Of a DNA stretch of 64,000 nt, positions 1-32,625 are shown piece by piece. Both the position numbers and the translations under genes were made by a program. The notes under the pieces are model-generated. The model worked only from the letters and a program-made list of their open reading frames with translations. It had not been told where the DNA came from and did not search any database. Each line of letters begins with the position of its first letter. The first letter of the stretch is position 1. Location of the stretch: positions 1-64,000 of the IMG/VR virus record IMGVR_UViG_3300042261_002390. One strand, 5' to 3'.

Positions 1-402
1 TTATATCCTAATTTTATCATTGCATTTTTTACTAATGTCTGTGCTTGTGAGATACTTATTGGTTTTTTTTTGTGGATTAAAACCAGTGGTACTTAGCCAT
101 TCTTGAAATCCATCTTGGAACTCTTGTGGTGTATCGATACGAGATGCAGCATATTTGACTGATGCTGATTTATCTGTTGCTTTTTGTAAATATGCCACAT
201 CAGCAGGTACTTTGTATTGCGTCGTTGGTAATTGTTCGTCAATTGGTACGCAGTTAGGTACTTCTTTACCTTCCTTATCTTTCATACCATATTGTTTATA
301 GCCATCCCAACATGAATCTTCTTCATTTAACACCGTTTTATATCCGGGATTTATTTTTCCCATCATTTCAAATAGTTTCTGTTTATTTTGAACATTTTTC
401 AT
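1..402 (-). CDS. Putative head-associated/internal protein with shared N-terminal leader and CWxGY...VPNC motif
   Basis: Likely true start MKNVQNKQKLFEMM at 402 (GGTATTTATA motif on the minus strand at ~418-426); contains CWDGYKQYGMKDKEGKEVPNCVP, a motif type seen in T4-like phage late proteins; TAA stop at 1-3. Confidence 0.6.
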   Translation of the reverse strand: MKNVQNKQKLFEMMGKINPGYKTVLNEEDSCWDGYKQYGMKDKEGKEVPNCVPIDEQLPTTQYKVPADVAYLQKATDKSASVKYAASRIDTPQEFQDGFQEWLSTTGFNPQKKTNKYLTSTDISKKCNDKIRI

Positions 403-434
403 GTCACCGATTTTAATATAAATACCACAATAAC

Positions 435-466
435 AAAAAAATGCACCAAGAAATATGGTGCATTTT
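435..466 (-). terminator. Intrinsic terminator-like hairpin
   Basis: AAAATGCACCA (438-448) / TGGTGCATTTT (456-466) 11-bp stem with T-run on the minus strand. Confidence 0.6.
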
Positions 467-641
467 AATCTCATCAGTCAGTCTCAAATTTTACGTAACC
501 ACTGTCTGGCAATAAAATTTTGAAAAATCATTCCTGATTTTCTCTCAGACATAACTTAATTCATTCATACATTAAGCAATGATTTTCATTTAATAAATAC
601 TGTATTTCATGAAATTTATTATGGATTAATATAAAACATTT

Positions 642-650
642 AGTATTTAT
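642..650 (+). promoter_or_regulatory. Putative late promoter motif AGTATTTAT (first of ~25 copies)
   Basis: Same GTATTTAT core recurs ~15-70 nt upstream of starts at 402(-), 667, 3909(-), 3986, 5177, 7760, 10254, 10863, 13002, 15110, 21296(-), 22811, 30013, 32212, 35920, 38615(-), 40772(-), 41076, 43980, 44419, 48997(-), 53850, 54986, 57942; CTATTTATA variant before 21398 and 22025. Confidence 0.75.
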
Positions 651-666
651 TATAAATTTTAAATCG

Positions 667-1266
667 ATGAGCACAAAAAATTTAATAAAAATCATTAATG
701 AAACTATTGAAGAATTTGATTTTCTCAATAACGAATCTTCGCTTATGGAACAGGAAACCATTGAATTGCTGAAAAATGAAGATTTACAGAAACGATTTAT
801 TTGTGATTCATTATTGGAGAGAAATGATAAAATAAAAATCCTTAATAATGAAACAGCTAGTTTAGACGGTAATTGGGAAGATGACCCTGAAAACGCAAAC
901 ATGCTTTCAATTCAATATGACCTAAAGTTACAATACACATATGATTCGAGTAAAGAACCTTTAGTATTTAATTTATTTTTTTATGGTGATAATGTTAGTA
1001 TTTCTACAGCAGATAGATTTGAAAAGGGCGATTATTACTCACCATCAGAAGGAGAATCTTGGTTTAGAAATATTGAATGGGATGATATTAATGTTGAATT
1101 GGCAACCGAAGAAGGTGATGAAATTAGATTTATAGCATTTGAAAAAGCACCGTATAATATTAAAAGAATATTCATACGTGAATTTGTCGAAAATTTTATT
1201 AGTTCATATACGAATATGGATGTTCGTGATAATATTGATAAATCACAAGTAACACAATTCTGCTGA
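667..1266 (+). CDS. Hypothetical late protein (acidic)
   Basis: 199-aa ORF behind late motif; N-terminal LIKIINE; no recognisable catalytic motif. Confidence 0.6.
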   Translation: MSTKNLIKIINETIEEFDFLNNESSLMEQETIELLKNEDLQKRFICDSLLERNDKIKILNNETASLDGNWEDDPENANMLSIQYDLKLQYTYDSSKEPLVFNLFFYGDNVSISTADRFEKGDYYSPSEGESWFRNIEWDDINVELATEEGDEIRFIAFEKAPYNIKRIFIREFVENFISSYTNMDVRDNIDKSQVTQFC

Positions 1267-1267
1267 G

Positions 1268-3909: not shown

Positions 3910-3985
3910 GAATTTATAATAAATACTATTGGACTTTAATTAATATTATCGTATTTATAGAAAATAATAAATTCTAAAGAATCTC

Positions 3986-5149
3986 ATGAATAAAAACATT
4001 AAACTAAGATTATTCGAAATGATGAATAGAGTTGGTGGAATGCCAATTGTTAATGAAGCTGATTCATTACCACCCGGAATTACTAATAATGACATCATTT
4101 CATTGGATGATTTTGTTGATTCAGGCAATATTCAAGAAGATACGACTGGTGTTCAAATGCAACCAGCAGATATAAAAAAAATTGTCGATAAAAGGAAATC
4201 TGATGCTCCACGTGATAGAGAAGACCCATATATTCATTCTAAGACAATTGAAATTATTGATAAAAATGGTAATGAAATCGACCAAGAACAGCTAAAAAAA
4301 ATAATAACGCAAAGACCACCAACACTTTTAAGTAGTAATGAAAAAGTGGGTAAAACAGGTATCTTAAAGATATCATTGCCTGCATATAAAGGATTATATT
4401 ACGATGAAAAAGATGGACAATTTAAAGTAGTTAATACGTGTCCAAACGCTGGTGAATGTAAACTATATTGCTATCAACAAAAGGGTAGGTCTGTTATGTA
4501 TGATAATGCTGCAATTAGTAAAACCAGAATATTAAACTTTTTACTAAACCATTGGGATGCATTTAAATATAAAATGGTTGATGAAATTGAAACAGCCAAA
4601 ATGAGCAATGATAAAAAGGGATTAAAAACTATCGTAAGATGGCATGATTCCGGGGATTTTATTTCTGATAAGTATCTTGATTTAGCTATGGATATTGCAA
4701 GGGAAACACCAGATGTTTTACATTATGCATATACTAAAATGGTTTCATCAGCAAAACGAGCAAACGTACCTAGTAATTTTGTGTTTAGATATTCATTAGA
4801 TACTGGTTCACCCGAAACCGGATTAGTTAACAAATATGAGGATAAACATACTGAAGTAGTGCCTAAGCAATTATTTAAAGACTTAATGTATGCTAAAAAA
4901 GAACCGATTAAAGGTGGAAAAGAATTTAAAAATATTTGGCATTATAATTCAAAACACGATTTAATCGAATTTAAAAACAGATTATCAAAACAATATGGAA
5001 TCGATGTAAATACAATTATAACATTTGATGAAATGCAAAAAATTCCTGAGCAAGGTGATAATAAGTGGAACGTAATTGTTACACCATCAGACCCGGACAC
5101 TGCAGCACATAGAAAAGATGTATTAGGTGTTTATTTATTGATTCATTAA
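3986..5149 (+). CDS. GP88-like phage protein (Cys cluster, radical-SAM-like)
   Basis: NTCPNAGECKLYCY Cys triad, IVRWHDSGDF and HYAYTK motifs characteristic of the Gp88-like family; N-terminal leader KLRLFEMM...IVNE. Confidence 0.65.
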   Translation: MNKNIKLRLFEMMNRVGGMPIVNEADSLPPGITNNDIISLDDFVDSGNIQEDTTGVQMQPADIKKIVDKRKSDAPRDREDPYIHSKTIEIIDKNGNEIDQEQLKKIITQRPPTLLSSNEKVGKTGILKISLPAYKGLYYDEKDGQFKVVNTCPNAGECKLYCYQQKGRSVMYDNAAISKTRILNFLLNHWDAFKYKMVDEIETAKMSNDKKGLKTIVRWHDSGDFISDKYLDLAMDIARETPDVLHYAYTKMVSSAKRANVPSNFVFRYSLDTGSPETGLVNKYEDKHTEVVPKQLFKDLMYAKKEPIKGGKEFKNIWHYNSKHDLIEFKNRLSKQYGIDVNTIITFDEMQKIPEQGDNKWNVIVTPSDPDTAAHRKDVLGVYLLIH

Positions 5150-5176
5150 TAAGTATTTATATAAAATTTAGTAATT

Positions 5177-5632
5177 ATGAAAAAGAACGACAAACAAAGA
5201 CTTTTCGAAGTCATGGGTAGGTTAGATAAAACATTTAAGCCAAAACTCAATGAAGACATAATGAACGCCGAACCAGAAGAACACCAAAACGAAGGCGCAA
5301 CCAATAAAGCTAAGTTAGAAGAATTGGTTAAAATGGCAAAGAAAGCATATAAACATTTGCCAGATGGTGAATTACCTTCATGGGTTCAAGATAATATTAC
5401 AATTGCAAAAGAACGCTTAGGTAGTGTTTGCGGTTGGTTGCATAGCGAAGAAGAAGCCGAAGAAACTGACATGGAAGGTGAACATCGTGATATGGATGAC
5501 GAAGAAGAACACGATGAAGAAGCCGAAGAAACTGAAACTGATGAAGAAGAATCTGACGATGAAGAATCAGAAGAAGAGTCTGAAGAACCAGAAAAAGAAT
5601 CAAAACCAAAAATTCCAGTAAAGAACTGGTAA
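5177..5632 (+). CDS. Putative head internal protein, acidic C-terminus
   Basis: Leader KQRLFEVMGRLDKTFKPKLNE; ELPSWVQDNITIAKERL motif; poly-Glu/Asp tail; late motif at 5152-5160. Confidence 0.6.
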   Translation: MKKNDKQRLFEVMGRLDKTFKPKLNEDIMNAEPEEHQNEGATNKAKLEELVKMAKKAYKHLPDGELPSWVQDNITIAKERLGSVCGWLHSEEEAEETDMEGEHRDMDDEEEHDEEAEETETDEEESDDEESEEESEEPEKESKPKIPVKNW

Positions 5633-5645: not shown

Positions 5646-6422
5646 ATGTACAACGAAGCTGATGATAAAAAAACACATAAATCTGGCATATACGTAATTA
5701 AAAATATAATTAACAATAAAATATATGTTGGTCAAACTATTAATATTATTGAAAATAGAATAAAAAGGCATCAATACGAATTGAAAAATAATAAACATGC
5801 TAATATTTATCTACAAAGAGAATTTAATAAGTTTGGTATACATTGTTTTGAATTTAATATATTATATTTCGGCATAATAACTATTGATGAATTAAATGAA
5901 ATTGAAATTAATCTAATTCAAAAATATAAATCGAATGATGAGAATTTTGGTTATAACATCTTACTTGGCGGTAAAAATCAAAAATTACCAGAAACTGTAA
6001 AAAATAAAATAAGCAAATCGTTGTTAAATAATAAATTTACATCAAAAAAAATTGTTCAATATGATATACAAACCGGAAATATTCTTAAAACATGGGATTC
6101 GTTTAATGAAATTAAACGTCAGCTTGGGTTCAATATAGGAAATATTGCCCAATGTTGTAAATTAAATCCGCAATATCCACATTCAAATAAATTTGGTTGG
6201 AGATATTTAGATGATTACGAAAAATCAAATAAAAATGATTTAATGTATGATTTAAATTCAAAAAAACATAAAAAAATTATTGCAATAAACTGTGATGAAA
6301 TAATAGAATTTAAATCAATAAAAGAGGCTGAAGTTTATTTTAATGTTCACAGAAAATTCATACATAGAGTATTATCAGGAAAAAGAAAAAAATATCATAA
6401 TTATGAATTTAAATATGTATAA
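5646..6422 (+). CDS. Free-standing GIY-YIG homing endonuclease
   Basis: SGIYVIKNIINNKIYVGQT (GIY-YIG), HANIYLQREFNKFG, GYNILLGG, NUMOD-like ETVKNKISKS and C-terminal HTH (FKSIKEAEVYFNV). Confidence 0.9.
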   Translation: MYNEADDKKTHKSGIYVIKNIINNKIYVGQTINIIENRIKRHQYELKNNKHANIYLQREFNKFGIHCFEFNILYFGIITIDELNEIEINLIQKYKSNDENFGYNILLGGKNQKLPETVKNKISKSLLNNKFTSKKIVQYDIQTGNILKTWDSFNEIKRQLGFNIGNIAQCCKLNPQYPHSNKFGWRYLDDYEKSNKNDLMYDLNSKKHKKIIAINCDEIIEFKSIKEAEVYFNVHRKFIHRVLSGKRKKYHNYEFKYV

Positions 6423-7683: not shown

Positions 7684-7759
7684 CAAAATATCTTTTTTAC
7701 ACTAAAATAAGTATTTATGAGAAATGTAAATAATAATAGCTATTAATAAAACATAAAAA

Positions 7760-10171
7760 ATGAAAAGTCATACATCAAAAGAGGCATTATTCGAAAGAAT
7801 GAGAACGTTAGCCGAAGTAAACAAAACATCGCTTAAAGAATCGCTAAATCGTACATTAGGTACGTTGATTGATTATAAAAGAGCAGCAGATGGTGTTGTT
7901 TATGGTATTGTTAAAGAAAATCACCTATATTACATAAAGAAAGGTGGTATTAAATCAGACCCAGACGTAACTGATTTTGCATATATTGGTGGTTTAGCAA
8001 ACATCACTAATTTCCAATATAAATCATTATCTGAAGCAGATAAAAATCGTAATATGCTTTTACATACAATCAATGAAGCATATTCATTGAATATGGGTAA
8101 GAAAAAAATTAATGAAGATGCTGCTGAAGACGAAATCGACAACGCTGAAGCAAGATTAGGTGATTTAGATGCTGCAACTGCTGCAGAAACTGAACCTGAT
8201 GATGTTCAGATGGCTGCTGGATTAGAAGCAGAACCAATGGGTGATGAACCTGCACCAGAAGGCGGTGAAGAAGAATTGCCAGCACCAGAAGGTGAACCTG
8301 CACCAGAAGGCGGTGAAGAATTGCCTACTGACGGCGGTGAAGAAGAATTGCCAGTTGATGGTGAACCTGCACCAGATGGTGAAGAAGAATTACCTACTGA
8401 TGGTGAAGAAGAATTACCTGTTGATGGTGAACCATCACCCGAAGGAGGCGAAGATGAAAATATTCGTGAATTAGAAAAATCTATTGGTAAATTAACCAAT
8501 GTTATTAGAAAAACGGATTTAGAACCAACACAATCAAAATCCTATCTTAAGTCATTGATTCAGTCGTTTAAAGATAAATTACCTGAACTTGAAATTGAAG
8601 ATAGAAAGGAAATTGCAAACATGATTACTAAAGTAGTACCACCTGAAGATGTTGAGGATTTGAGTAGTGTCGTTCCTCAAGACGATGAAGCAGGTATGGA
8701 AGAAGCAGCATGTAATGAATGTGGTAGTTTTGCAAAATATGCAGAATCAAGAGGATATGGTAGCGCAGATGCATTAATGGAATGTGGTGAAGAAGAAGTT
8801 GGTAATCTTGTAAGCGGATATGCTAATGCAAACGCTGAAGGTATGAACGACGGTGACCATGAAAATGTTGCACTTGTAATCAAATTAGTCAATCCTGAAA
8901 TTTTAAATAGTTTAAAGGGTGATTATGGACACGAAGAATATGCAAATAAACTCACACCATATGTTGATTCAATGAACGAAGAAACCGAAGAAGAAGGTTA
9001 CACAAAACTCAACGAATTGTTCGGTAGTTTAGGACGTGGTTTAAAGGGTGCTTTTGGTAAAGTAGGTGGTGATGTTGCAAAAGGTGTTAGCGACAAATAT
9101 ACAGCAGCAAAAGAAAAAGTTCAGCAATATGGTACTGGTGTAAAACAAGCTTACCATCAAGCTAACGTTGGTGCTGAAATCGATAAGCTTGAAACGCAAG
9201 CAAACGAATTAAGACAGCAAGTACTCGCATTAGCAGATAGAGCAAAAAAAGCAGGTCAAACTGACGTTAACGTCAATAGTTTACTTAGAAGTATTGGAAA
9301 TCAAATAGTTACTGGTAACATAAATATTGGTGGTACTAAGGCAGGTTCAACAATTCAAAGAGAAAATATTGACCCGGCAAATATTGAAACGCAATCACTT
9401 TATGAAGAAGATGAAGAAATTGACAATGTTGAAGTTGACGATACCGAAGCTACTGAAGAAAAACCAGAAATTAGTTTTGCACCTGCAGCACAAACATTAG
9501 GTGCTGGTGTAAATAAGCCCGATGGTGCTCCAACAACAATTAGTGTAACTTCAAAAGAAGGTGCTAAAGTTGATGTTAGTTTGAGTGAAGTTGTTAAAAA
9601 GTTAAGAGAAATTGTTGCTGAAGGTAAAGTTAAAGAAGGTAATGCGTTTACTGCTAAATTAGCTAATACTCCAAAAGGTAAGGATTTTAAACTTGGTGAC
9701 AAGAAAATGAAAGATACTTCGGATTACGATAAAGAAAACGTTGAAGAAGCAGCAAAACCATCTGCCGGATTATCGAAAGAAAAGAAATCAGCTATTGTAA
9801 AAAAAGCTAAAGCTGGTGAAGATATTGGTAAGAAGGGAAAGGGTTTTAAAGAAGTCGAAAAAGCAGCAAAAAAAGGTGGTGCTGAAGACCCTAAAGCAGT
9901 AGCTGCAGCAGCTATGTGGAAAAATGTAAAGCGTGAAGGTGTTGAGGCAAAACCAATGAAGAAGAAAATGGAAGAATCTTTCGTAGCAAACAATGGTTTC
10001 ACTGTTGAAAATATCCGAGAATATACTAGACATAGATTAGGTATTTTAAGCGGTAAGGAAAAAGAATCTTTAACAGAAGCATCAACAAATCAAAAATTCG
10101 AAAAAGCATTGAGTATGTTAAACGAAGCAATTGAAAAACAATTCAACGTAGCTAAATCGAAATTTAAATAA
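7760..10171 (+). CDS. Large acidic low-complexity head-associated protein (core/internal protein candidate)
   Basis: 803 aa; leader KEALFERMRTLAE..LKE; Glu/Pro/Gly repeats; late motif at 7710; terminator downstream. Confidence 0.55.
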   Translation: MKSHTSKEALFERMRTLAEVNKTSLKESLNRTLGTLIDYKRAADGVVYGIVKENHLYYIKKGGIKSDPDVTDFAYIGGLANITNFQYKSLSEADKNRNMLLHTINEAYSLNMGKKKINEDAAEDEIDNAEARLGDLDAATAAETEPDDVQMAAGLEAEPMGDEPAPEGGEEELPAPEGEPAPEGGEELPTDGGEEELPVDGEPAPDGEEELPTDGEEELPVDGEPSPEGGEDENIRELEKSIGKLTNVIRKTDLEPTQSKSYLKSLIQSFKDKLPELEIEDRKEIANMITKVVPPEDVEDLSSVVPQDDEAGMEEAACNECGSFAKYAESRGYGSADALMECGEEEVGNLVSGYANANAEGMNDGDHENVALVIKLVNPEILNSLKGDYGHEEYANKLTPYVDSMNEETEEEGYTKLNELFGSLGRGLKGAFGKVGGDVAKGVSDKYTAAKEKVQQYGTGVKQAYHQANVGAEIDKLETQANELRQQVLALADRAKKAGQTDVNVNSLLRSIGNQIVTGNINIGGTKAGSTIQRENIDPANIETQSLYEEDEEIDNVEVDDTEATEEKPEISFAPAAQTLGAGVNKPDGAPTTISVTSKEGAKVDVSLSEVVKKLREIVAEGKVKEGNAFTAKLANTPKGKDFKLGDKKMKDTSDYDKENVEEAAKPSAGLSKEKKSAIVKKAKAGEDIGKKGKGFKEVEKAAKKGGAEDPKAVAAAAMWKNVKREGVEAKPMKKKMEESFVANNGFTVENIREYTRHRLGILSGKEKESLTEASTNQKFEKALSMLNEAIEKQFNVAKSKFK
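8243..8452 (+). repeat. Degenerate coding tandem repeat EPAP(E/D)G(G)EEELP
   Basis: GAACCTGCACCAGAAGGCGGTGAAGAA at ~8246 and ~8294, with variants at ~8365 and ~8429. Confidence 0.85.
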
Positions 10172-10862: not shown

Positions 10863-12923
10863 ATGACGACTGAACGTAATAACAATACACACGAAAAAGA
10901 AGATATATTTCCTGAACATATTCCAATAATACCATTGGATATTGAGAGAGAAAAAGCCAAAGAACAAGCTAGAAAACTGGCTGATGACTTAAGAAAAAAA
11001 ACAGGAAAAATTGAGCCAATTATAATCACTAAGGCTGGTAAGGCAAAAAAAGCATCGGATTTAATATACTTCGAACAAGAAGACGAAATTATTAGATGCA
11101 TTTCAGACCCGGTGTATTTTATTGAAACCTATCTAACGGTTTTCGACCAAACACAAGGTACTGCTGGTATGATTGTCCCGTTTAAATTATTTGATTTTCA
11201 AAAAGAATTAATACAAACATATCGAGAAAACCGATTTATTGTTGCCAATAAATATCGACAAGCAGGTATTTCAACAACTACATGTGCATATATTGCATGG
11301 TACATAATGTTTAACAATAATAGACAGGTTGCTATTATTGCAAATAAACTAGAAACAGCACGTGATGAAATCATGAGTGATGTTGTATTATTTATTGAAG
11401 GATGTCCGGATTGGTTAAGACCTAAAACAGGTAAAGAAACTAAAGGCAAGTATAAAGACACACAAAAATTAAAAATATACGATAATGACTCAAAGTTGGG
11501 GGCGTTTTCAGCTAAGGGTGGTCTTCGTGGTATGACACCTACACTAATTTTTTGGGATGAAACAGCGTGGACTGAAAAGGGCGATACTTTTTGGACTGCA
11601 GCAAAGCCAACTCTTGGTACTGGTGGTGGTGCAATCATGGTTAGTACTCCGTCCGGGTTAGATGCTGTATTTTATAAACACTTTAATGAAGCACGTAAAG
11701 GTAAAAATAGTTTTAAAGCAGTTGAATTATGGTGGTTTAATGACCCACGCTATAATAAAGGTTTGGAGTGGGTAAAAAACAAAAATAAAGAAAACGAAAT
11801 TAGAATTCAAGATGAAAATTGGGATAAAATCAGAAGAATCCAAATGATGGATGATGGCTGGGAAGCTACATCACCTTGGTTCGAAGAACAAGTAAGGGAT
11901 GCTAACGGTGATATGCGTAAAATTGCACAAGAGTTACTTTGTTCATTCTTAGGTTCTGGTGATAATTTTATTGCTGAAGAGTATTTAAAAAGAATTCAAG
12001 AAAATGAAATAAGAACACCAATCAGACAAGAATATCTTGATTTAAATATGTGGATATTTGAAGACCCACAACCATTAGAAACATATATAATGGCACTAGA
12101 TGCATCTCCGGGTCATGGTGAAGATAATTCAACACTAAATATGTTAAAAACAGTTGAGATTATTGAAGAAAAAATAATCACAAAAAACGGTAAGCCAAAA
12201 AGAGTTAAAATAAAAAGGCATAAAGTAGAACAAGTGGCAGAATACTATGGAAAAGTTTCTCCCCAAATGCTTTCAGAAATTGCTTACCAATATGGCAGAC
12301 GATATAATAATGCATACTGTGTCGTTGATATAACTGGTGGTTACGGTGTTCAAACTGTTGAGAAATTACTTGAAATTGGCTATGAGAACGTTCATTATGC
12401 TGAAGTTACACATAAACCGTCTCGTGATAGATTACAAGGTTATATTAAAAAAGGTCAAAAAGTAATGCCAGATGGTGCAGTAATGAATGTTGACCTAATA
12501 CCGGGTTTCTTTATTGGCAATAACCGTCCATCAGTATTGCTTGAAATGCAAAGAGCTATTCATCTTGAAGATGTTATAATCAGGTCAATTCGATTGTTAG
12601 ATGAATTAAAAACATTTGTTACTGTTCCGGGGAATCGTGTTGCTGACCATAAACGTTCATTCCATGATGATTCAGTGATGGGACTTGCAATCGGATTATT
12701 TGTATTAAATTTTGATATGGCAAGATTTAAGCAAAGTAAAGGTGTGACAGAAAAAATGTTAAATGCAATAATAACTAATAATGAAATAGGGGAGATTGGG
12801 AAAAGAATAGCTGATGATATGGTAAAAAACAACAAACCAATTGTTTCACCAACAAGTGTTTCACCTAACAATCCATATTTAGCACATAATTGGCTATTTA
12901 ACGGATTAAATAGAAGAAACTAA
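10863..12923 (+). CDS. terL: Terminase large subunit (T4 gp17-like)
   Basis: PFKLFDFQ adenine-binding motif, NKYRQAGIST Walker A, LIFWDE Walker B, VSTPSG motif III, ALDASPGHGED and HDDSVM RNase-H-type nuclease motifs. Confidence 0.95.
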   Translation: MTTERNNNTHEKEDIFPEHIPIIPLDIEREKAKEQARKLADDLRKKTGKIEPIIITKAGKAKKASDLIYFEQEDEIIRCISDPVYFIETYLTVFDQTQGTAGMIVPFKLFDFQKELIQTYRENRFIVANKYRQAGISTTTCAYIAWYIMFNNNRQVAIIANKLETARDEIMSDVVLFIEGCPDWLRPKTGKETKGKYKDTQKLKIYDNDSKLGAFSAKGGLRGMTPTLIFWDETAWTEKGDTFWTAAKPTLGTGGGAIMVSTPSGLDAVFYKHFNEARKGKNSFKAVELWWFNDPRYNKGLEWVKNKNKENEIRIQDENWDKIRRIQMMDDGWEATSPWFEEQVRDANGDMRKIAQELLCSFLGSGDNFIAEEYLKRIQENEIRTPIRQEYLDLNMWIFEDPQPLETYIMALDASPGHGEDNSTLNMLKTVEIIEEKIITKNGKPKRVKIKRHKVEQVAEYYGKVSPQMLSEIAYQYGRRYNNAYCVVDITGGYGVQTVEKLLEIGYENVHYAEVTHKPSRDRLQGYIKKGQKVMPDGAVMNVDLIPGFFIGNNRPSVLLEMQRAIHLEDVIIRSIRLLDELKTFVTVPGNRVADHKRSFHDDSVMGLAIGLFVLNFDMARFKQSKGVTEKMLNAIITNNEIGEIGKRIADDMVKNNKPIVSPTSVSPNNPYLAHNWLFNGLNRRN

Positions 12924-13001: not shown

Positions 13002-15029
13002 ATGGCAGAACAAGAAAAAAAGGGTACAATATATCAACAACTCAATAAACTATTGAATTTAGATGGATTTGGCTTTCAAGATGCACAACCTTCGGTGTCA
13101 CAATCAACGCCTGCGAAAGAAACTAAGGTTATTATCAAAGGTAATAGTCCTGAAGAAATAATGAAAAAAGGTTTGGAGCTTGAGCAAAAACGTGAACTCC
13201 AAAATAAATTTTTTAGGACAACTGATAGAGGATTTCAAAAAGCACTTCAATATGAAGCAGCTAGGCTTCCTGCATATCTCGACTATGAAGGTATGGAATA
13301 TTACCCAATCATCTCATCAGCATTGGATTTATTCATGGAAGAAGCAACTACTATCGGTGTTAATGGTAAAATGTTGAATATCTATTCCAATAAAGAGCGT
13401 ATTAAAACCTTATTGGAGGAATTTTTCTACGATATTGTTGACGTTAATGTAAATTTACCTTTTTGGACTAGAAATATGGTAAAATATGGTGATAATTTTA
13501 TTCTTTTATATGGTGAGAGAAAAAAAGGTATCACACATGTTAAACAATTAGTTAATTACGAAATTGAAAGATTTGAGAGAATTCAAAATGGCGTACCAAT
13601 TGTTAAATTTAAAGAACGTATGACTGGTGATGAATTTAATCTGTTTGAAATAGCACATTTTAGATTACTTGGGGACGATAAATACATTCCTTATGGTTCA
13701 TCAGTTTTAAATAAAATTCGTCGTGTATTTAGACAATTAGTTATGGCTGAAGATGCTATGTTAACTTATCGAATAATACGTGCTGGTGAAAAAAAGGTAT
13801 TTAAAATTGACGTGGGAAATATTGATGAAGACGATATTGAAGATTACATCTATAAAGTAGCCACCAAGTTTAAAAAAATTGCACAAGTAGCACCAAACGA
13901 TGGTCAAATCGACTATAGATTTAATATTCTAGGAAACGATGAAGATTATTTTTTACCTGTAAGAAATGCAAACACTCAAACTGGTATTGATACCCTTCCC
14001 GGGGCATCTAATTTGGATGCTATTCAGGATATAGAATATCTCCGTGATAATTTATTTGTTGGACTTGGTATACCTAAACCATTTTTAAGCTTTCAAGATG
14101 CTGCTGGTGCTGGAAAAAACATGGCACAATACGATATTCGTTTTGCAAAAAAAATCAATCGTATTCAGCAAGCATTGATTCAAGAGTTGAATAAAATGGC
14201 AATGATTCATTTACTTTTATTGGGATATAGTAATGAAGATTTAACCGATTTTCAATTAACATTAACCAATCCATCAGTACAACAAGAATTGATGAAGTCT
14301 GAATTAATGCGAGATAAAGCTCAAACATATACTGAATTAACTCGTGGTGAAAACGGTATTGCTGCAATGTCACATACGAACGCTAAGAGAATGATTTTCA
14401 ACATGAGCGATAAAGAAATCGTTGAAGACTTGAAGCAGCAGAAAATGGAAAAAGTTGTCATGCAAGAACTTGCAGATGCACCAGTTTCAATTAAGAAGAG
14501 TGGTTTATTTACCGACATCGATAAAAGATTTGCAGAACCTGAAGGAGCATTAGGAATGTCACCGTCAGGTGGTACTGAAGCAGGTGGTATGCCACCTGTT
14601 GGTGGCGAATTGGGTGGAGCACCCGGAGCACCAGCATTAGGTGGTGAAATGGGTGGAGCACCAGCATTAGGTACACCTGCCCCAACACCCGGAGCACCTA
14701 TGGGTGGTGGTGAAATCGGAGGCGGTGGTGAAATCCCACCATTAGCTGAATCACAAGGAAAATTATCTTCAGAAGAATTTGCCAAACATGTTGAAAATCT
14801 AGTTTTTGGAAGTAGCTTGAAGATAAACCCAGCTAAAACTAAAAGAACAAGAAAAATAATCAATGAAAATACTGAAACAAACGAAAAGTTAAATAAAAAA
14901 GCACTTAACATGATTAGTGAAATCGATGATATACTAAAAAATTCAGAATCAATCAATAAAAAAAGAGTAACAAAAAATACTGAAAATGTGGATTTGGATG
15001 ACTTAAATGATATTGATATACCTGAATAG
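13002..15029 (+). CDS. Portal protein (T4 gp20-like)
   Basis: EDAMLTYRIIRAGEKKVFKIDVGN, EDYFLPVR, TGIDTLPGASNL, DIEYLRDNLFVGLGIP, DIRFAKKINRIQ match gp20 conserved blocks; follows terL. Confidence 0.95.
   Translation: MAEQEKKGTIYQQLNKLLNLDGFGFQDAQPSVSQSTPAKETKVIIKGNSPEEIMKKGLELEQKRELQNKFFRTTDRGFQKALQYEAARLPAYLDYEGMEYYPIISSALDLFMEEATTIGVNGKMLNIYSNKERIKTLLEEFFYDIVDVNVNLPFWTRNMVKYGDNFILLYGERKKGITHVKQLVNYEIERFERIQNGVPIVKFKERMTGDEFNLFEIAHFRLLGDDKYIPYGSSVLNKIRRVFRQLVMAEDAMLTYRIIRAGEKKVFKIDVGNIDEDDIEDYIYKVATKFKKIAQVAPNDGQIDYRFNILGNDEDYFLPVRNANTQTGIDTLPGASNLDAIQDIEYLRDNLFVGLGIPKPFLSFQDAAGAGKNMAQYDIRFAKKINRIQQALIQELNKMAMIHLLLLGYSNEDLTDFQLTLTNPSVQQELMKSELMRDKAQTYTELTRGENGIAAMSHTNAKRMIFNMSDKEIVEDLKQQKMEKVVMQELADAPVSIKKSGLFTDIDKRFAEPEGALGMSPSGGTEAGGMPPVGGELGGAPGAPALGGEMGGAPALGTPAPTPGAPMGGGEIGGGGEIPPLAESQGKLSSEEFAKHVENLVFGSSLKINPAKTKRTRKIINENTETNEKLNKKALNMISEIDDILKNSESINKKRVTKNTENVDLDDLNDIDIPE
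14575..14745 (+). repeat. Gly/Pro/Ala low-complexity repeat in portal C-terminal tail
   Basis: GGELGGAPGAPALGGEMGGAPALG; GCACCAGCATTAGGT occurs twice. Confidence 0.75.
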
Positions 15030-22024: not shown

Positions 22025-22726
22025 ATGAGTAGAATATTGCAAGCAGGTGAAAAAGGATTTGGAATTTTAATTGAAAGTGATGCTGGTTATATCAGTACTG
22101 ATTTAAATCCTGCGTTTATAAATGAAGGTTTTGAATTAAAGCCAAATGAACCTGTTCTAATTAATTGTATTTTACAGAAATGGGGTGTTAAAAATAAAAA
22201 TGGTCGAATATATCCAAAATCAGTATTAGTTCCCCAAGTTGAATCATATCAACAATTAGTATCTAATAATAGTGCTGTTTCTGAAGCAGACCATCCAGAT
22301 TCATCAATAATTTCATTACAAAATATCTCACACATGATTACTAAAATGTGGTGGGGTAAAGGCGACCATGAAAATGTATTATATGGTCAATTGAAAATCA
22401 TTGTTAGCCCGGGTTATATTAAATATGGAGTTGTTTCGGTTGTAGGTGATAAAATAATATTATACATACAAAATAAAATAAGATTAGGCATCTCATCACG
22501 TGGGGTTGGTAGTCTTAAAGAAATAAACGGCGAAAATTTAGTACAGTCAGATTTTGAGTTAATTGGTTTTGACTTAGTTGCAACTCCAAGTACTCCGGGT
22601 GCATATTTATTTCCTGAACAATCAAATTCAGTAACATTCGGTGAAAATTATGTACAAAAGAATGGAATTTATTTGAAGGAAGATGATGAGAAAATCATAA
22701 ATACACTCAATAAATTCTTATTATGA
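22025..22726 (+). CDS. Prohead protease (T4 gp21-like)
   Basis: KNKNGRIYP, SEADHP (catalytic His), GISSRGVGS (catalytic Ser), FDLVATPSTPGA. Confidence 0.95.
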   Translation: MSRILQAGEKGFGILIESDAGYISTDLNPAFINEGFELKPNEPVLINCILQKWGVKNKNGRIYPKSVLVPQVESYQQLVSNNSAVSEADHPDSSIISLQNISHMITKMWWGKGDHENVLYGQLKIIVSPGYIKYGVVSVVGDKIILYIQNKIRLGISSRGVGSLKEINGENLVQSDFELIGFDLVATPSTPGAYLFPEQSNSVTFGENYVQKNGIYLKEDDEKIINTLNKFLL

Positions 22727-22810
22727 TAGATTTTAAGTAGATTTTTATTAAAAAATATACTTTTTTAGAATGATTATGTATTTATATAAAAATTAACAAC
22801 ATTTCGAAAT

Positions 22811-24433
22811 ATGGCAGACGAAGAAAAAACATCAATTATTAAAGAAGCATTAGCTGATTTAAATGCTATTAGAGAAGCTGCGGAACTTAATGCCATGAAA
22901 AGATTGGCTCAAAGCAATCCGAATAACTTCGATAAATTGTTAAAAGAAGAATTAAATAAAAATAAAAAAGCAAAAGAATCTTATAAAAAAATAGATGATG
23001 CTGAAGAGTCTGAGCAATCAGATAAAACAAAATTAAAAAACGAATCTGATATGAAGAATCAAGCAAATGAGACCGTAAAGGTTGTTGACACAGTTGGAAA
23101 AGGCGAACCTTTTGAAAAAAAGGTTAAAGGTGGTAAACCTGTAGAAGAAGATGTACACATTAAAAAAGGTGGTGGTGTAACCATTACTGACACTATCGGA
23201 AAAAGCGACCCATTTTCTGAAAAGAAAAAAGGTCAAAAAATCGAAGAAGAACGTGAAAAAGATTTTATGGGCGATGTTGAAAGCGATACTCCAAACCAAG
23301 CTAAAGGCGAAACAGGTAAAGGTGTTGCATTTAAGGAAAAAATTAAACCACCTACTGTAGGTAAACCTATTTCAAATTTGAAAGAAGAATTCAACATTTC
23401 AGAACTTGACATGAGTACTGTAGGTACTGCATTGGATAATGCCGACGAAGAAGATGAAATCATCACTATTGATGAAATCGAAGAAGAAATTCAAGGCATG
23501 AGTGGATTACCCCGTCCTGAATTACAGAAACGTGGCGAACCACTTGGACAAACAGGTGATGCTTATCAACAATTAGTTAGTATGAGAAATCAAATTGACG
23601 AAATGTTAAAAGGTATGAATCCTGAAGAAGAAAGTGCTGGCATGGAAGAAGAAGGTATGGAAGAAGGCGATGATATTACTACTGCTGATATTGAATCAGT
23701 ATTAGGTTCAGCACCGGAAGAAGAAGAAGAGGAAGAAGAATCTTACGCTCCTGAAGAAGAAGAGGAAGAAGAATCTTATTTACCTGAACAGGAAGAAGAA
23801 GAAACTTATAAACCTGAAATCGAAGAAGCTTTAGGCGTTTCACATGCAACAAATAAAATTACAACAGCTCATAATCCACGTCCTGCGTATGCTAGTAGTC
23901 CAGCAGCAGTTGAAAGAAGAAGACCATCGACACAAGGCATGTATGAAAGCAAGAAATTTAATAGTTTAATTGAAGAAAACAAAAAGTTAACTAAAAAATT
24001 GAACGAAACAAAAAAATTGAAAGATTCTGCTACGTCATTGGTTGAAAGCTACAAAACAGCACTCGAAAAATATCGCAATCAATTGAAAGAAATGGCAGTT
24101 TTCAACACCAATTTAGCACACGTTAATAATTTATTGGTAAATGAAAGCTTGGCATTAACTCAAGATGATAAAATTAAAATTATCAACGGATTTAAAAAAG
24201 TTGATAGTATTACTGAATCACAGAATGTTTATAAAACTTTCTTAACAGAAATGAATGAAAGTGGTAAAAAAACAATTTCTGAAGGTATTAAAGGTAAAGT
24301 ATCAGCCTCGATACAGCCATCTTCAAAACAAAAACTTGATGAAGTAGTCGAAAAAACAGCATATTCAAATAATGAGCATGTTTCACGCATGAAAAATCTT
24401 ATTGAATATGTAGAAAAAAGAGGTAAAAAATAA
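22811..24433 (+). CDS. Prohead core/scaffold protein
   Basis: Acidic, coiled-coil protein between protease and MCP; C-terminal RMKNL motif. Confidence 0.75.
   Translation: MADEEKTSIIKEALADLNAIREAAELNAMKRLAQSNPNNFDKLLKEELNKNKKAKESYKKIDDAEESEQSDKTKLKNESDMKNQANETVKVVDTVGKGEPFEKKVKGGKPVEEDVHIKKGGGVTITDTIGKSDPFSEKKKGQKIEEEREKDFMGDVESDTPNQAKGETGKGVAFKEKIKPPTVGKPISNLKEEFNISELDMSTVGTALDNADEEDEIITIDEIEEEIQGMSGLPRPELQKRGEPLGQTGDAYQQLVSMRNQIDEMLKGMNPEEESAGMEEEGMEEGDDITTADIESVLGSAPEEEEEEEESYAPEEEEEEESYLPEQEEEETYKPEIEEALGVSHATNKITTAHNPRPAYASSPAAVERRRPSTQGMYESKKFNSLIEENKKLTKKLNETKKLKDSATSLVESYKTALEKYRNQLKEMAVFNTNLAHVNNLLVNESLALTQDDKIKIINGFKKVDSITESQNVYKTFLTEMNESGKKTISEGIKGKVSASIQPSSKQKLDEVVEKTAYSNNEHVSRMKNLIEYVEKRGKK
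23714..23818 (+). repeat. Three coding repeats PE(E/Q)EEEE(S/T)Y
   Basis: GAAGAAGAGGAAGAAGAATCTTA repeated twice plus a variant. Confidence 0.85.
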
Positions 24434-24461: not shown

Positions 24462-26144
24462 ATGGGATTTTTAACAGAAAGTGCTGAAGTTGGTAATATC
24501 GGATTAAAACAACTTCGTGAGCAAAGAGAAATTACAACTAACCGTTGGGAAAAAATCGGTTTATTGGAAGGTTTGGAAGGTAATGTAAAAGAAAATTGTG
24601 CTCAATTATTTGAAAATCAATTGTCTTATATGATTAACGAATCTTCAGATTCGACCAATTCAGGTCAATTTGAAACCGTAGCGTTCCCGGTTATCCGAAG
24701 AGTATTTGCAAAATTACTTGCTAACGACATCGTGTCGGTTCAAGCATTGAATTTACCTATTGGTAAATTGTATTACATTAACCCAAAAGCTAGTGTTCGT
24801 GTACAAGATGGTACTCATACAAACGTAGCTGGTCTTGAGCATACTTCACCTGATGGTGCTTATGGTAATGCTGCAACAAAACCATCAACTTCAAGAACAC
24901 AGTTCGAAACTCGTTCATTATACGATGCATTCTATGCAAGTGAATATAATGAAGAAGGTACTTCATTGTTCGACCGTTCAAAAGGTGACATGACTGTTCA
25001 CACTGGTGCAACTTCTGCATCTACTTTCGTTATCGGTACTGATAAATTTATCACTGTACAAATTGGTGGTTTCTTGGTAGCAGATTCAGGTAAATTAGTA
25101 GGTCCTGCTGGTGTTCAGATGGATACTGAATCATTCCTTGCTTCTTTGAAAATTACTGCTGATGCTGACTTAGTAGCTCCTGCTGGATTTACTGACCAAA
25201 ACATTCCTGCTGGTTCTTCAATTCCTTTCAACGTAAAGGTACAGAAATACGGTCAGGCAATCGTTGACAAAGCTGGTATTATTACTTTAGTTGTTGACGT
25301 TCAGTATGCCGGAACTAATGGATATCAACCATTGAGTGCTACAACTACTCCTACATTCAACTACGAATATAGAAGTTATTCAGACCTTGAAGAAGATTCA
25401 AGAATGGCTGAAGTTACTTTCCAACTTGACCAAGTTACTGTTTCCGTAGAAACTCGTAAAATGCGTGCTATGTGGACACCTGAATTAGCTCAGGACGTTA
25501 GTGCATTCCATAACATTGATGCTGAAGCTGAATTAACTGCTTTATTGTCAGAACAAATGGCTGCTGAAATCGACCGTGAAATTCTTCGTGACCTTCGTAG
25601 AGGTGCTGCTTGGACTGCTCGTTGGGACTACAACGGATTGCGTCGTCAATCAAATACTTACTATGGAACACAAAAAGACTGGAATCAGACATTAATCACT
25701 AAGATTAACCAGATTTCTGCTCAAATCCATAAAGCTACTCTTCGTGGTGGTGCATCTTGGGTTGTTGTTTCTCCTGAAGTAAGTGCTGTATTCGATGACC
25801 TTGAATACTTCCACGTATCAAACGCTGCTCCTGAACAGGACAAATATAACATGGGTATCGAAAAAATCGGTACATTGAGTGGACGTTACATCGTTTACCG
25901 TGACCCATATTCACCTGCTAATACTATCCTTATTGGACACAAAGGTAATAGCATCTTAGAGACCGGTTACATATACGCTCCATACGTACCAATGCAGTTA
26001 ACTCCTGTAATGTACAACCCATTCGATTTCACTCCTATTCGTGGTATCATGACTCGTTATGCTAAGAAAATGGTATTGAACCGTTACTACGGACGTATCT
26101 ATTGCGATGGTCTTCAAACTTTTGGTATTGGTGATTTGCAATAA
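24462..26144 (+). CDS. Major capsid protein (T4 gp23-like)
   Basis: VRRVF-like PVIRRVF, DIVSVQAL, TRKMRAMWTPELAQDVSAFHNIDAEAELTALLSEQMAAEIDREI, GYIYAPYVP, RGIMTRYA. Confidence 0.97.
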   Translation: MGFLTESAEVGNIGLKQLREQREITTNRWEKIGLLEGLEGNVKENCAQLFENQLSYMINESSDSTNSGQFETVAFPVIRRVFAKLLANDIVSVQALNLPIGKLYYINPKASVRVQDGTHTNVAGLEHTSPDGAYGNAATKPSTSRTQFETRSLYDAFYASEYNEEGTSLFDRSKGDMTVHTGATSASTFVIGTDKFITVQIGGFLVADSGKLVGPAGVQMDTESFLASLKITADADLVAPAGFTDQNIPAGSSIPFNVKVQKYGQAIVDKAGIITLVVDVQYAGTNGYQPLSATTTPTFNYEYRSYSDLEEDSRMAEVTFQLDQVTVSVETRKMRAMWTPELAQDVSAFHNIDAEAELTALLSEQMAAEIDREILRDLRRGAAWTARWDYNGLRRQSNTYYGTQKDWNQTLITKINQISAQIHKATLRGGASWVVVSPEVSAVFDDLEYFHVSNAAPEQDKYNMGIEKIGTLSGRYIVYRDPYSPANTILIGHKGNSILETGYIYAPYVPMQLTPVMYNPFDFTPIRGIMTRYAKKMVLNRYYGRIYCDGLQTFGIGDLQ

Positions 26145-29963: not shown

Positions 29964-29997
29964 AATAGTACGATTATAAAGTATTTATACTAAAATG

Positions 29998-30028
29998 CAA
30001 ATATAGTATATTATGGGATTAATTACAA
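29998..30028 (-). promoter_or_regulatory. Bacteroidota-type promoter (TTG-N20-TATATTTG)
   Basis: Plus-strand CAAATATA 29998-30005 and CAA 30026-28. Confidence 0.6.
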
Positions 30029-31131
30029 CGGTTGATAAAAATAAATTATACCTACATGTTAAACACGAACTTGGTTTTCCTCTCAGACCATTTGAAATTA
30101 AAGATGAGATGATGGATTCATATCTCGAAATGGTTGTTGAAGATTATTCATCAATTGTAAATAATTGGTTGATTGAACAGCAATGGATTAGTTTAGAAGG
30201 TATGAGTAAAGAAAATGGCGATTTTCTTTCAGCATTTTCGAATAAATCGAATCACTATATGGAATCATTTACCTACGCATATTCAAAACAAGTAGGTTTA
30301 GGTACTAATGCACCAGCAGCACCGGGATGGGAATTAAAACGTGATTTCATTGTTACTGAAGCTAATACACAACATTATATGATACCTGCAGGTAGGGAAG
30401 TTAATGAAGTATTATGGGAAACTCCACCTGAAATAGACCAAGGTTTGGTTGACCCATTTGCATTAAATGCTTGGTCGCCGGGTATGGTTGGATGGTCATA
30501 TCTTGGTCGTCCTGCGATGTATGTGCAACCAACATTTTCAACACTTTTAGCTGCACAAGATAGAAGGATGAAACAAAGAGTTTTACAATCAACATTAACT
30601 TATCGCATCACAGGTTTGGCAAATGGAGAAAAAATATTACATTTGTACCCGATTCCCGGAGACCGACATGAAATTTCAGGTGCTTGGGGTAAACATTATG
30701 CCGGAAGAAAGGTATGGTATTGGTATTATGAAACCAATCCACAAACAAGGGATAAGTGTTTAGAGGAAAATGATGATACTGTAAAATTACCATCAGACCC
30801 TCCAACCAAAGTGCTGCAATGGGGTAATTTAAATGATGTTGCTCATCAACAAATTCGTAATTTACTTATTGCTAAAGTAAAAATGGTTATCGGTGGAATT
30901 CGTGGCTTTTATAGCGGTGAATTAGGTGTTGCCGAAAAGCAATTGACAATGGATTATCGTCATTTGCTTGATGAAGGAACTAAATTGAAAGATGATACAG
31001 AAAAGTTAATTCTTGAGCAATTAGGTAGAATTAGTCAAGCAACCTTAACCGAAACACGTGCTAAAATAGCTGAAAATGTTAACAAGGAACGTGGCTATCA
31101 ACCGCCAATGTTTCCTATTATCGCTATTTAA
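30013..31131 (+). CDS. Neck/head-completion protein (T4 gp13-like)
   Basis: KHELGFP...EIKDEMMD N-terminus, LHLYPIP, AKVKMVIGGIRG...GEL; late motif; precedes gp14-like gene. Confidence 0.7.
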   Translation: MGLITTVDKNKLYLHVKHELGFPLRPFEIKDEMMDSYLEMVVEDYSSIVNNWLIEQQWISLEGMSKENGDFLSAFSNKSNHYMESFTYAYSKQVGLGTNAPAAPGWELKRDFIVTEANTQHYMIPAGREVNEVLWETPPEIDQGLVDPFALNAWSPGMVGWSYLGRPAMYVQPTFSTLLAAQDRRMKQRVLQSTLTYRITGLANGEKILHLYPIPGDRHEISGAWGKHYAGRKVWYWYYETNPQTRDKCLEENDDTVKLPSDPPTKVLQWGNLNDVAHQQIRNLLIAKVKMVIGGIRGFYSGELGVAEKQLTMDYRHLLDEGTKLKDDTEKLILEQLGRISQATLTETRAKIAENVNKERGYQPPMFPIIAI

Positions 31132-31132
31132 A

Positions 31133-31636
31133 ATGGAAAATTTGTTGAAATTAATGTCAAAAAAACCAAAACTAATATTATTAGTTGGTATTTCAGGAAG
31201 TGGTAAATCTACTTGGGTTAGATTACATGCCGACCCAAACGCTATTGTAGTATCCTACGATATGCTTAGATTTGAAATTAATGGTAATGTTGATGACCAT
31301 CCTAATTCATCTAAGATTCACTTAATTGCATTAAGCAGAATTGTTAAAGGATTATGCGATGGTAAGGACGTTATACTTGATGCAACTAACGTATATTCTA
31401 AAGGACGTAGAGAACTATTAGCTGAAATCCGTGAAATGGCTGATGTTGATTTCGTAGCATGTGCAAAAATTTTTCCAGCTAACCCTGAGTTAAGTAAATT
31501 AAGAATCGAAAACGACATTAAAGCAGGATTAAACCGTTCTAATGTTCCTGTTGAAGCAATTAACAGGCAATATCAAATGTTTTGTGAAAACACACATAAA
31601 TTAGAGCGTGACGGATATAAAATTATTGTAGTATGA
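31133..31636 (+). CDS. P-loop kinase (AAA_33 / polynucleotide-kinase-like)
   Basis: LVGISGSGKSTW Walker A, VILDATN, R-lid motif RIENDIK; likely start MENLL at 31133. Confidence 0.8.
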   Translation: MENLLKLMSKKPKLILLVGISGSGKSTWVRLHADPNAIVVSYDMLRFEINGNVDDHPNSSKIHLIALSRIVKGLCDGKDVILDATNVYSKGRRELLAEIREMADVDFVACAKIFPANPELSKLRIENDIKAGLNRSNVPVEAINRQYQMFCENTHKLERDGYKIIVV

Positions 31637-32184
31637 AAAAGAAAAAACAAATAATTGACTTAGAACAAGATAGATATGGATTATTTATGTCAGACAATTC
31701 GTTTGATTTAGATGTGATGTATGGTAGAAACTTCCTGCAAACGGATAATGCGCAGGAAGTTATTATACATAAAATTAATGTGATTGAGACTAAAACCCAT
31801 GCATTATATGGTCAAGCAAAAACTAAGGATAAAAAATTTATGCCACCTGTGCGTATAAATGTGATGGTAGGTGTTACCGAAGCCAAACAAAACTATTATG
31901 GTGATAATCCGGGGGGAATTACTCGTGATGATACAGGTACAATTACATTTGGTGTTTATTTAAAAGAACTTGAAGAAAAGCAATTGGAAATTGACCGTGG
32001 TGATATTGTCGAATATAATATGAGTGGTGAGAAAAGTAGATTCTATGAAGTAGAAAATGCTAACAACGTAACTGACGAAACACTTAAAACTATTGGTGGA
32101 TTTAAACCATACTGGAAAAAAATTACTGGTACTCCTGTGAAAGAAGACGTTGTGCCATTTTTGCATGAAACAAAAGGAAACTAA
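31633..32184 (+). CDS. Neck/head-closure protein (T4 gp14-like)
   Basis: ALYGQ...KFMPPVRI, ITFGVYLKELEE, IDRGDIV, FYEVEN pattern; position after gp13-like gene. Confidence 0.65.
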   Translation: MKKKKQIIDLEQDRYGLFMSDNSFDLDVMYGRNFLQTDNAQEVIIHKINVIETKTHALYGQAKTKDKKFMPPVRINVMVGVTEAKQNYYGDNPGGITRDDTGTITFGVYLKELEEKQLEIDRGDIVEYNMSGEKSRFYEVENANNVTDETLKTIGGFKPYWKKITGTPVKEDVVPFLHETKGN

Positions 32185-32211
32185 TTAGTATTTATATTAA
32201 AACTTTATAAA

Positions 32212-32625
32212 ATGGCAAATAATAATAAAAAACAACGATTGTTTGAGGTAATGGGTAAAGTAGATAGCTCATTTAAACCAAAATTAAATGAAGAAATGAC
32301 ACAGCCTGTTGATGAAATGTCTAAATGGGGTGTAACCCGTGCGAATCCAAAATATTCTCACTTTGCAGTTTTAAAAGGCGTTGACCCAGCAGTTGATGGT
32401 AAAATTGTTAATGGTTGGGAATATGGTGGTTATGACCCGGCAGAATTACGTCAATTTAAGAAAGATTATTTCTTCCAAGATATAAAAGATAATCAAATCA
32501 ATCCAAAATTAGTAAATATTGTAACCGCAAAACATTTACAAAAACAAGGAATTGACCCTTACGATTTTAAAAATTGGTATAAAAATGATAGGGACGGCTT
32601 TGTAGACCAAATATTCACAATGTAA
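32212..32625 (+). CDS. Putative head internal protein with shared leader
   Basis: KQRLFEVMGKVDSSFKPKLNEE nearly identical to the leader of the 5177 ORF; own late motif and terminator. Confidence 0.65.
   Translation: MANNNKKQRLFEVMGKVDSSFKPKLNEEMTQPVDEMSKWGVTRANPKYSHFAVLKGVDPAVDGKIVNGWEYGGYDPAELRQFKKDYFFQDIKDNQINPKLVNIVTAKHLQKQGIDPYDFKNWYKNDRDGFVDQIFTM

Follow-up and report, generated by a model that had tools for sequence, protein, structure and literature searches.

Leader-bearing genes of the window

The window analysed here, a stretch of 64 kb, comprises positions 1–64000 of the 246,149 bp IMG/VR contig IMGVR_UViG_3300042261_002390 (G+C content of the window ~30 %) and carries five genes whose products, otherwise unrelated, begin with a common leader of 24–27 amino acids (aa; ~26 residues), the possible function of which as a cleavable tag directing proteins into the phage head is the subject of this report. 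The first leader (322..402, minus strand; 27 aa, ending V-L-N-E) belongs to open reading frame (ORF) 1–402(−), where it matched a leader hidden Markov model (HMM) with an independent E-value (i-E) of 7.5e-13 and is preceded by a late-type box, TATTTATA, at 417–424(−); the product is 133 aa in total. The other four are on the plus strand and likewise matched the leader HMM: the leader at 3986..4057 (24 aa, ending I-V-N-E; late box at 3952–3959) opens ORF 3986–5149, which encodes a 387 aa GP88 (PF17338) domain protein; that at 5177..5254 (26 aa, ending K-L-N-E; i-E 2.6e-15; late box at 5154–5161) opens ORF 5177–5632, encoding 151 aa with a small, very acidic body; that at 7760..7840 (27 aa, ending S-L-K-E; variant box TATTAATA at 7741–7748) opens ORF 7760–10171, whose product of 803 aa contains an acidic PEGGEE repeat region and is a conserved ‘core’ member of the tagged set; and that at 32212..32292 (27 aa, ending K-L-N-E; late box at 32189–32196) opens ORF 32212–32625, encoding a 137 aa protein of unknown fold in a hypervariable cargo slot. 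When the bodies were compared without their leaders they fell into five different BLAST families, and searches of the five bodies against Pfam, NCBIfam and PHROGs returned only the GP88 domain in ORF 3986 and a short Cys-motif match in ORF 402(−).

Two of these bodies have features of their own. Directly after the leader of ORF 1–402(−), at residues 27–59, the body opens with the Cys motif C-W-x-G-Y...G-K-x-V-P-N-C-V-P (CW.GY...VPNCVP), which aligns with internal segments of seven functionally unassigned PHROG families, recurs in the tagged protein P0029 and, judged from its sequence, looks like a small mobile mini-domain. Within ORF 7760–10171, acidic Pro/Glu/Gly repeats (P-E-G-G-E-E-E-L-P units) occupy window positions 8190–8500, where the local G+C content reaches 37 %.

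That five otherwise unrelated ORFs begin with one leader had been claimed by an earlier, sequence-only reading of this DNA, and both the ORFs and their N-termini proved to be as quoted there. With all six frames of the 64 kb translated, the LFE.M core of the leader occurs six times, five times at residues 9–14 of the leader ORFs and once in a 7-codon non-ORF frame, against a mean of 0.62 per window in dinucleotide shuffles, and the full pattern [KR]..[LIVM]FE.M.{6,20}[LIVM][NK]E was observed five times but not once in 200 shuffles. Within the window the leader HMM matched exactly the five ORFs, with i-E values from 1e-9 to 3e-15, and nothing else. Synonymous differences are present in the DNA alignment, and across relatives of the window the R-L-F-E-[VM]-M core is written in 41 distinct 18-nucleotide encodings that use five Arg codons, five Leu codons and both codons each for Phe and Glu; this variety of synonymous versions indicates that selection acts on the leader as a peptide and not as DNA.

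The late box, (G)TATTTATA, the reverse complement of the T4 late promoter TATAAATA, lies on the sense strand 13–26 nucleotides (nt) upstream of the ATG in four of the five leader genes and also precedes the portal, protease, scaffold, putative tape-measure and other structural-region genes. Elsewhere in the window, late-type boxes were located upstream of structural genes at 12972–12979, 21998–22005, 22779–22786 and 54960–54967 on the plus strand and at 21313–21320 and 40789–40796 on the minus strand; such boxes are always in the sense orientation, with the 3′ end 4–50 nt (mostly 13–26 nt) upstream of the start codon. The late motif had been ascribed to each of the five leader genes, which is strictly true of only four, since gene 7760 lacks the strict box and has the one-mismatch variant instead.

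Distribution, anatomy and cargo of the leader

The window belongs to a clade of large, uncultured jumbo phages represented in IMG/VR by contigs of up to 365 kb, between which and the window the terminase is 64–83 % and the capsid protein 76–91 % identical. A cultured relative was looked for without success: no DNA-level match to the window was found in any of 50,697 deposited phage records, among which the best match to its capsid protein, from a Flavobacterium phage, is 34 % identical. Besides its five window matches, a leader HMM of the kind suggested in the sequence-only reading gave, across all six frames of 2.57 Mb of DNA from relatives, 129 significant hits, every one of them N-terminal, in 103 unique proteins of at least 21 unrelated families, and with more loci included the count rose to 187 unique tagged ORFs. 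A word-indexed protein search with the leader region alone found three proteins only and was for that reason judged too insensitive; it was replaced by an exhaustive profile search of 1.84 billion representative proteins (E <= 0.001), which recovered 577 protein clusters (clustered at 50 % identity) with the leader. The global figures given here for anatomy, sites and bodies rest on the best 150 of these 577 representatives. Among them the leader starts within the first 12 residues in 145, and the bodies fall into 54 BLAST components, with Pfam domains in only a handful (AAA_33/Zeta-toxin-like kinase, DUF4313, DUF6926, nucleotidyltransferase and rotamase). The strict core, back-translated, was present in 79 stretches of IMG/VR, and all those matched to a contig name came from clade contigs; this strict version found no further copies in the remaining 182 kb of the window’s own contig.

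The leader consensus, drawn from 126 of the 150 best-scoring representatives, is M-K-K-D-x-K-Q-R-L-F-E-V-M-x-R-L-D-x-T-F-K-P-K-L-N-E, in which conservation is 90 % or higher at K6, R8, L9, F10, E11, M13, F20 and the terminal E. As read from the alignment, with no dedicated predictor applied, it is charged and amphipathic with no hydrophobic run, and a hydrophobic core of the Sec or Tat type was not found. AlphaFold (AF2) models of two unrelated cargo proteins have the same plan, namely a short helix over the core, a disordered linker that holds the site, and a confident globular domain: in the model of ORF 3986 the helix spans residues 5–13, the predicted local distance difference test score (pLDDT) is below 50 at residues 1–26 and the confident domain begins at about residue 100, and in that of ORF 32212 the helix spans residues 10–17, the disorder residues 25–43 and the domain residues 45–137. 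The stretch bearing the site (L-N-E or V-N-E) has a pLDDT below 50 in both. In alignment A5 the leader block stops exactly at L-N-E, and between this point and the conserved body lie insertions of 0 to ~300 residues. Other short modules recur behind leaders: many tagged proteins have in common a second module, A-F-N-D-A-G-E-P...Y-S-E-P-x-E-P-E-Y-D, shortly after the leader, and W-N-F-D-K-K-K repeats that follow an L-L-T-E site are common to other tagged proteins (proteins listed for such post-leader modules are P0018, P0030, P0059, P0071, P0100 and P0129, and L095:17765–18718).

All tagged genes seen lie in structural-gene regions. Homologues of ORF 7760 (~800 aa) stand upstream of the terminase gene in 28 of 29 relatives, with a diverged leader that ends S[LIV]KE. 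Downstream of the capsid gene, conserved genes enclose two slots that hold different tagged genes, or none, from one relative to another; the conserved genes that flank these slots had no match in PHROGs. The portability of the leader is illustrated by a polynucleotide-kinase-like (Pnkp-like) P-loop kinase, which carries it in five loci (including L082:17456–17989, L088:17927–18451 and L127:16176–17009) and does without it in five, among them the window copy at 31133..31636(+), which the leader HMM did not match; in two of the five relatives with a tagged kinase an extra domain of ~100 aa lies between leader and kinase. We considered the N-terminus of the window kinase, M-E-N-L-L-K-L-M..., as a decayed leader and rejected it, the resemblance being visual only and the leader HMM giving no signal. 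In one relative the leader is fused to an ADP-ribosyltransferase (ART) in a late structural-gene context (L082:17992–18462; ART-PolyVal, 34.5 bits against a cut-off of 31.2), an enzyme not present in the window itself.

Head genes, candidate cleavage sites and internal leaders

The window encodes a set of head genes of T4 type. The large terminase (10863..12923, +; Pfam Terminase_6N), which served as the anchor for finding relatives, has three leader genes directly upstream and is followed by the portal protein of gp20 type (13002..15029, +; Pfam Portal_T4, 9.2e-60). Further downstream, also on the plus strand, are the genes for the prohead maturation protease (22025..22726), which is the presumed leader-removing enzyme, for an acidic putative scaffold/core protein of 540 aa (22811..24433), assigned by its position between the protease and capsid genes and presumed to be the docking platform of the leader, and for the major capsid protein of gp23 type (24462..26144; Pfam Gp23, 3.7e-73; T4 gp23 in the PDB, 4e-23). 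The identification of ORF 22025 as a gp21-type protease, made in the sequence-only reading, is well founded: it scores 72.3 bits against a cut-off of 27 for Pfam Peptidase_S77 and aligns to the T4 gp21 structure 5JBL with an E-value of 3.5e-12, and the aligned region contains ADHP (His) and SSRG (Ser), which presumably are the catalytic His and Ser motifs of a gp21-type protease.

Candidate cleavage sites of one kind run through these proteins. In the leader, the terminal motif is L-N-E in 115 and [LIVM]-x-E in 137 of the best 150 global representatives; in the local set, the P3 residue is Leu in 66 and Leu, Ile or Val in all of the 81 scored sites, and 63 of the 81 lie 15–18 residues from the LFE core. 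The protease has L-I-E at residues 15–17 and I-N-E at residues 32–34, both invariant in 64 orthologues; T4 gp21 has LIE-9 near its N-terminus (PMC9026906). The predicted propeptide (delta region) of the capsid protein (24462..24641, +) ends in an invariant I-N-E at residues 58–60, which is followed by a variable stretch and lies 12 residues before the N-arm. Capsid residue 72 aligns to T4 gp23 residue 93, that is, mature residue 28, and the I-N-E sits where the cut of a gp23-type propeptide would be expected. The putative scaffold protein, for which profile searches gave no family match, contains 30 hydrophobic-x-Glu motifs, many of them conserved in 50 orthologues. Separately, we asked whether the leader mimics the end of the capsid propeptide (A-Q-L-F-E-N-Q...I-N-E) and rejected the idea, as the HMM score of -3.3 bits was below the 95th percentile of shuffles (0.6).

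The most telling result for the link between leader and protease is the occurrence of internal leaders in poly-cargo proteins. Fifteen of the top 150 representatives contain a second, internal leader without a start codon and consist of two leader–cargo units, the domains of which had no annotation. A hydrophobic-x-Glu motif (M-Y-E, I-Y-E, F-R-E, M-N-E, L-N-E and others) lies within ~10 residues before the internal leader in 16 of 18 cases, and L-N-E follows the internal leaders; two internal-leader ORFs checked on the DNA were continuous under the standard code. An excisable targeting peptide would be expected to have just this form, a unit flanked at either end by a putative cutting site.

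Several other genes of the window and its relatives deserve mention. A GIY-YIG/NUMOD homing-endonuclease-like ORF (5646–6422, +) stands between two leader genes, and an untagged ORF (6428–7438, +) with a weak N-terminal DUF5754 match, a nucleotidyltransferase-like match and a strong match to PHROG 36119 also lies between tagged genes. Directly downstream of the capsid gene, ORF 26231–27688(+) combines a Mom-family domain (87 bits; DNA modification enzyme of the Mu Mom type) with a GIY-YIG nuclease domain, an unusual pairing. A thymidylate-synthase homologue of 372 aa (33478–34596, −) matches the entire 266-position Pfam profile and so carries ~100 extra residues; it could be a nucleotide-modifying variant. 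The tail sheath gene is at 41076. In relatives L055–L069 and L075–L080 the terminase match is partial (residues 1–360 only, or from ~260/360 to 686) and lies within long contigs, which suggests that an insertion such as an intron, an intein or an endonuclease splits the gene in these relatives.

Interpretation and comparison with known systems

The existence of the leader, its position, conservation and modularity, its site motifs and its co-occurrence with T4-type head genes are matters of direct observation. Because every sequence-level feature of the T4 scheme is reproduced, we take the leader to be, probably, an encapsidation propeptide that acts in the manner of T4’s capsid targeting sequence (CTS), is unrelated to it in sequence and is employed on a much larger scale. 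The proposal of a modular packaging tag cut by a gp21-type protease, with which the sequence-only reading had concluded, is thereby supported, every prediction that sequence data can test having been borne out. From these features we infer docking, cleavage, retention in the head and injection in the following order. Tagged genes would be expressed late, and the N-terminal amphipathic helix (K-Q-R-L-F-E-V-M-x-[KR]-[LV]) would dock the protein onto the scaffold/core of the assembling prohead, around which the shell would close. The S77 protease encoded by ORF 22025 would then cut after the Glu of [LIV]-x-E (mostly L-N-E) in the disordered linker, the same reaction removing the capsid propeptide after I-N-E and degrading the scaffold; the leader peptide would leave, the mature cargo would remain in the head, and accessory cargo at least would enter the host along with the DNA. 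As the tag is short and self-contained it could be gained, lost and duplicated, with hypervariable cargo slots and poly-cargo proteins as the result.

We regard as evenly balanced between right and wrong the broader proposal that a whole clade of uncultured 250–365-kb phages uses the leader as a universal, portable module for encapsidation and release, distinct from the T4 CTS. Any protein starting with the leader, or any polyprotein segment after a leader, would then enter the head, be released there by the prohead protease and pass into the host. If it is true, the ~577 tagged clusters, almost all of them without known domains, would constitute a catalogue of injected host-takeover and anti-defence effectors, and the poly-cargo ORFs would be virion-processed polyproteins, a kind so far undescribed for tailed phages.

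A number of observations weigh against the reading of the leader as an encapsidation propeptide. A canonical [LIVM]-x-E is lacking in 8 of the 21 local families and in 13 of the 150 global representatives. Both the ART and the kinases belong here, offering only K-S-E or S-D-E, or no Glu; tagged proteins of this kind may be packaged uncut, may be cut at relaxed sites or may fall outside the model. In this AT-rich proteome the motif is also common, 51 % of ORFs having one at residues 17–42, so that the argument for cleavage rests on the position of the site and the identity of its residues and not on its presence alone. The leader helix was modelled at low confidence in both AF2 models, and Foldseek found nothing significant for the ORF 3986 model in the PDB or for the ORF 32212 model in AFDB clusters (best E-values 0.07 and 0.6, template modelling scores <0.3). 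Nothing resembling the leader was picked up by its HMM in the capsid, scaffold or protease proteins. No homology of the leader to the T4 CTS was detected, tblastn giving a single chance-level match (E = 10) among the 50,697 phage records, a collection that includes hundreds of Escherichia phage records matching gp23, and no leader-carrying deposited phage was found there by the same means. The box of gene 7760 has its mismatch, and in relatives the late box is only modestly enriched, preceding 48 % of leader genes and 33 % of other ORFs (p = 6e-5). Finally, those conserved tagged proteins that adjoin the terminase may belong to the head core and not be injected effectors.

Extended to the whole tagged set, this last point becomes an alternative in which the leader serves as an assembly propeptide for components of the head core and for nothing else, the tagged proteins building or sizing the prohead and being subsequently degraded, or kept as structural filler, without delivery to the host. 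The tagged proteins of ~800 aa, GP88-like and small acidic type do adjoin the terminase, the first of them in nearly every relative, the small ones are extremely acidic in the manner of the core-derived peptides of T4 (PMC9026906), and no function could be assigned to the five bodies of the window. However, hundreds of unrelated, hypervariable and mostly non-conserved bodies are unlike the parts of a structural core, and the enzymes among the tagged proteins (ART, kinases, nucleotidyltransferase) suggest an activity in the host, so that we consider this account improbable for the set as a whole, although it may well apply to the conserved subset alongside encapsidation of effectors. We think it highly improbable that the leader is instead a prodomain that inhibits or chaperones the protein until it is removed, or that it directs proteins to a destination other than the head (tail lumen, membrane or cell compartment), with the Glu site serving for activation. 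Potentially toxic enzymes (ART, Zeta-toxin-like kinase) carry the leader, and a cleavage-type motif with late timing would fit any protease-activated precursor; but a 12-residue amphipathic helix on a disordered, often very long and variable linker is unlikely to inhibit dozens of unrelated folds, the leader has no hydrophobic signal-peptide core, all tagged genes seen are in structural-gene regions, and S77 proteases are known to act inside proheads (PMC5694885). That the common 5′ end is merely a recombination or expression cassette (promoter, ribosome-binding site and first codons) for swapping genes into slots, with a functionless peptide, is hardly credible: tagged genes do lie in hypervariable slots, and many have a conserved upstream box at a fixed spacing of 13–15 nt, but this view is already contradicted by conservation at the amino acid level with free synonymous variation. 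Internal leader copies in long ORFs far from any promoter also speak against it, as does retention of the leader across relatives with terminases only 65–82 % identical, in which the bodies are fully diverged.

Should the leader be an encapsidation propeptide, a label of 26 residues would identify the packaged proteome of a whole uncultured clade from sequence alone. The head-carried, injected proteins of jumbo phages are normally learned only by virion proteomics of cultured phages. The tagged families number in the hundreds and are nearly all of unknown function, the few recognisable ones including ADP-ribosyltransferase and kinases, and many of the tagged genes occupy hypervariable slots, as genes engaged in an arms race would be expected to do.

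The closest parallel is T4 itself, in which all internal head proteins join the scaffolding core by means of an N-terminal CTS of 10–19 residues that gp21 removes after hydrophobic-x-Glu (PMC3012670, PMC9026906, PMC5694885, PMC5512222), the internal proteins (IPs) being diverse and having only the CTS in common (PMC3012670, PMC9026906, PMC5694885). Like the CTS of IPI, IPII and IPIII and the related T-even IP loci, the leader is a short N-terminal tag on unrelated, fast-evolving late proteins (PMC3012670, PMC9026906); it ends in a predicted hydrophobic-x-Glu site for a gp21-type protease, its targeting and processing determinants would be separable, and the accompanying portal, capsid protein, protease and terminase are of T4 type. 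Unlike the CTS, it is longer, consists of a helix plus linker, strongly prefers L-N-E, marks 577 clusters in place of a handful of proteins per T-even phage and has internal copies in poly-cargo ORFs. T4 Alt is a head-packaged, gp21-processed and injected ADP-ribosyltransferase (PMC9026906, PMC5512222), with which the fusion of leader and ART in the one relative, in its late structural-gene context, may be compared; the tagged ART, however, is of the ART-PolyVal/HYD type and not of the Alt/VIP2 R-S-E clade (PMC5512222), its leader has no canonical [LIV]-x-E, and the enzyme comes from a relative and not from the window.

In the giant phages phiKZ, 201phi2-1 and SPN3US a T4-related prohead protease similarly cleaves behind Glu, stripping many internal head proteins of their N-terminal propeptides, and conserved N-termini have been noted there on the paralogues gp53 and gp54 (PMC5694885). 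Those propeptides differ from the leaders described here in being mostly >100 aa, with no single common leader and with Ala, Ser or Gly at P3, where the leaders of 24–27 aa have Leu, Ile or Val at all 81 scored sites. The polyvalent proteins of phages and conjugative elements, which are predicted to be head-packaged, injected and perhaps processed multi-effector polypeptides, have the ART-PolyVal domain in common with our set (PMC5512222), whereas the effectors here are mostly single-domain proteins, each with its own leader, and fused ones are separated by leader-plus-site units. As for sufficiency of a short N-terminal sequence, ~30 N-terminal residues of P1 DarB, the cargo of which is anti-restriction, are enough to direct a reporter into the capsid (PMC9024508). 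DarB is, however, a single protein in the stepwise Dar assembly pathway, with no common leader and no known removal by an S77 protease. The cargo-loading peptides of encapsulins are short conserved peptides that dock diverse cargo inside a shell of HK97 fold. They differ from the leader in being usually C-terminal and uncleaved, in binding the shell protein directly and in serving a non-viral compartment.

The principle being known from T-even phages, the system is not categorically new. No paper that connects a capsid targeting sequence with metagenomic huge phages came up in a literature search. What is new is that an uncultured jumbo-phage clade has a tag of its own, independent of T4’s, that the tagged repertoire is so large and that leader-plus-site units occur inside polyproteins. 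If our reading is true, it extends the principle of the T4 CTS to a distant lineage with an unrelated tag and adds to it such units within polyproteins, and once a host is at hand, or assembly in vitro can be carried out, phage engineering could gain in the leader a second, independent tag for packaging proteins.

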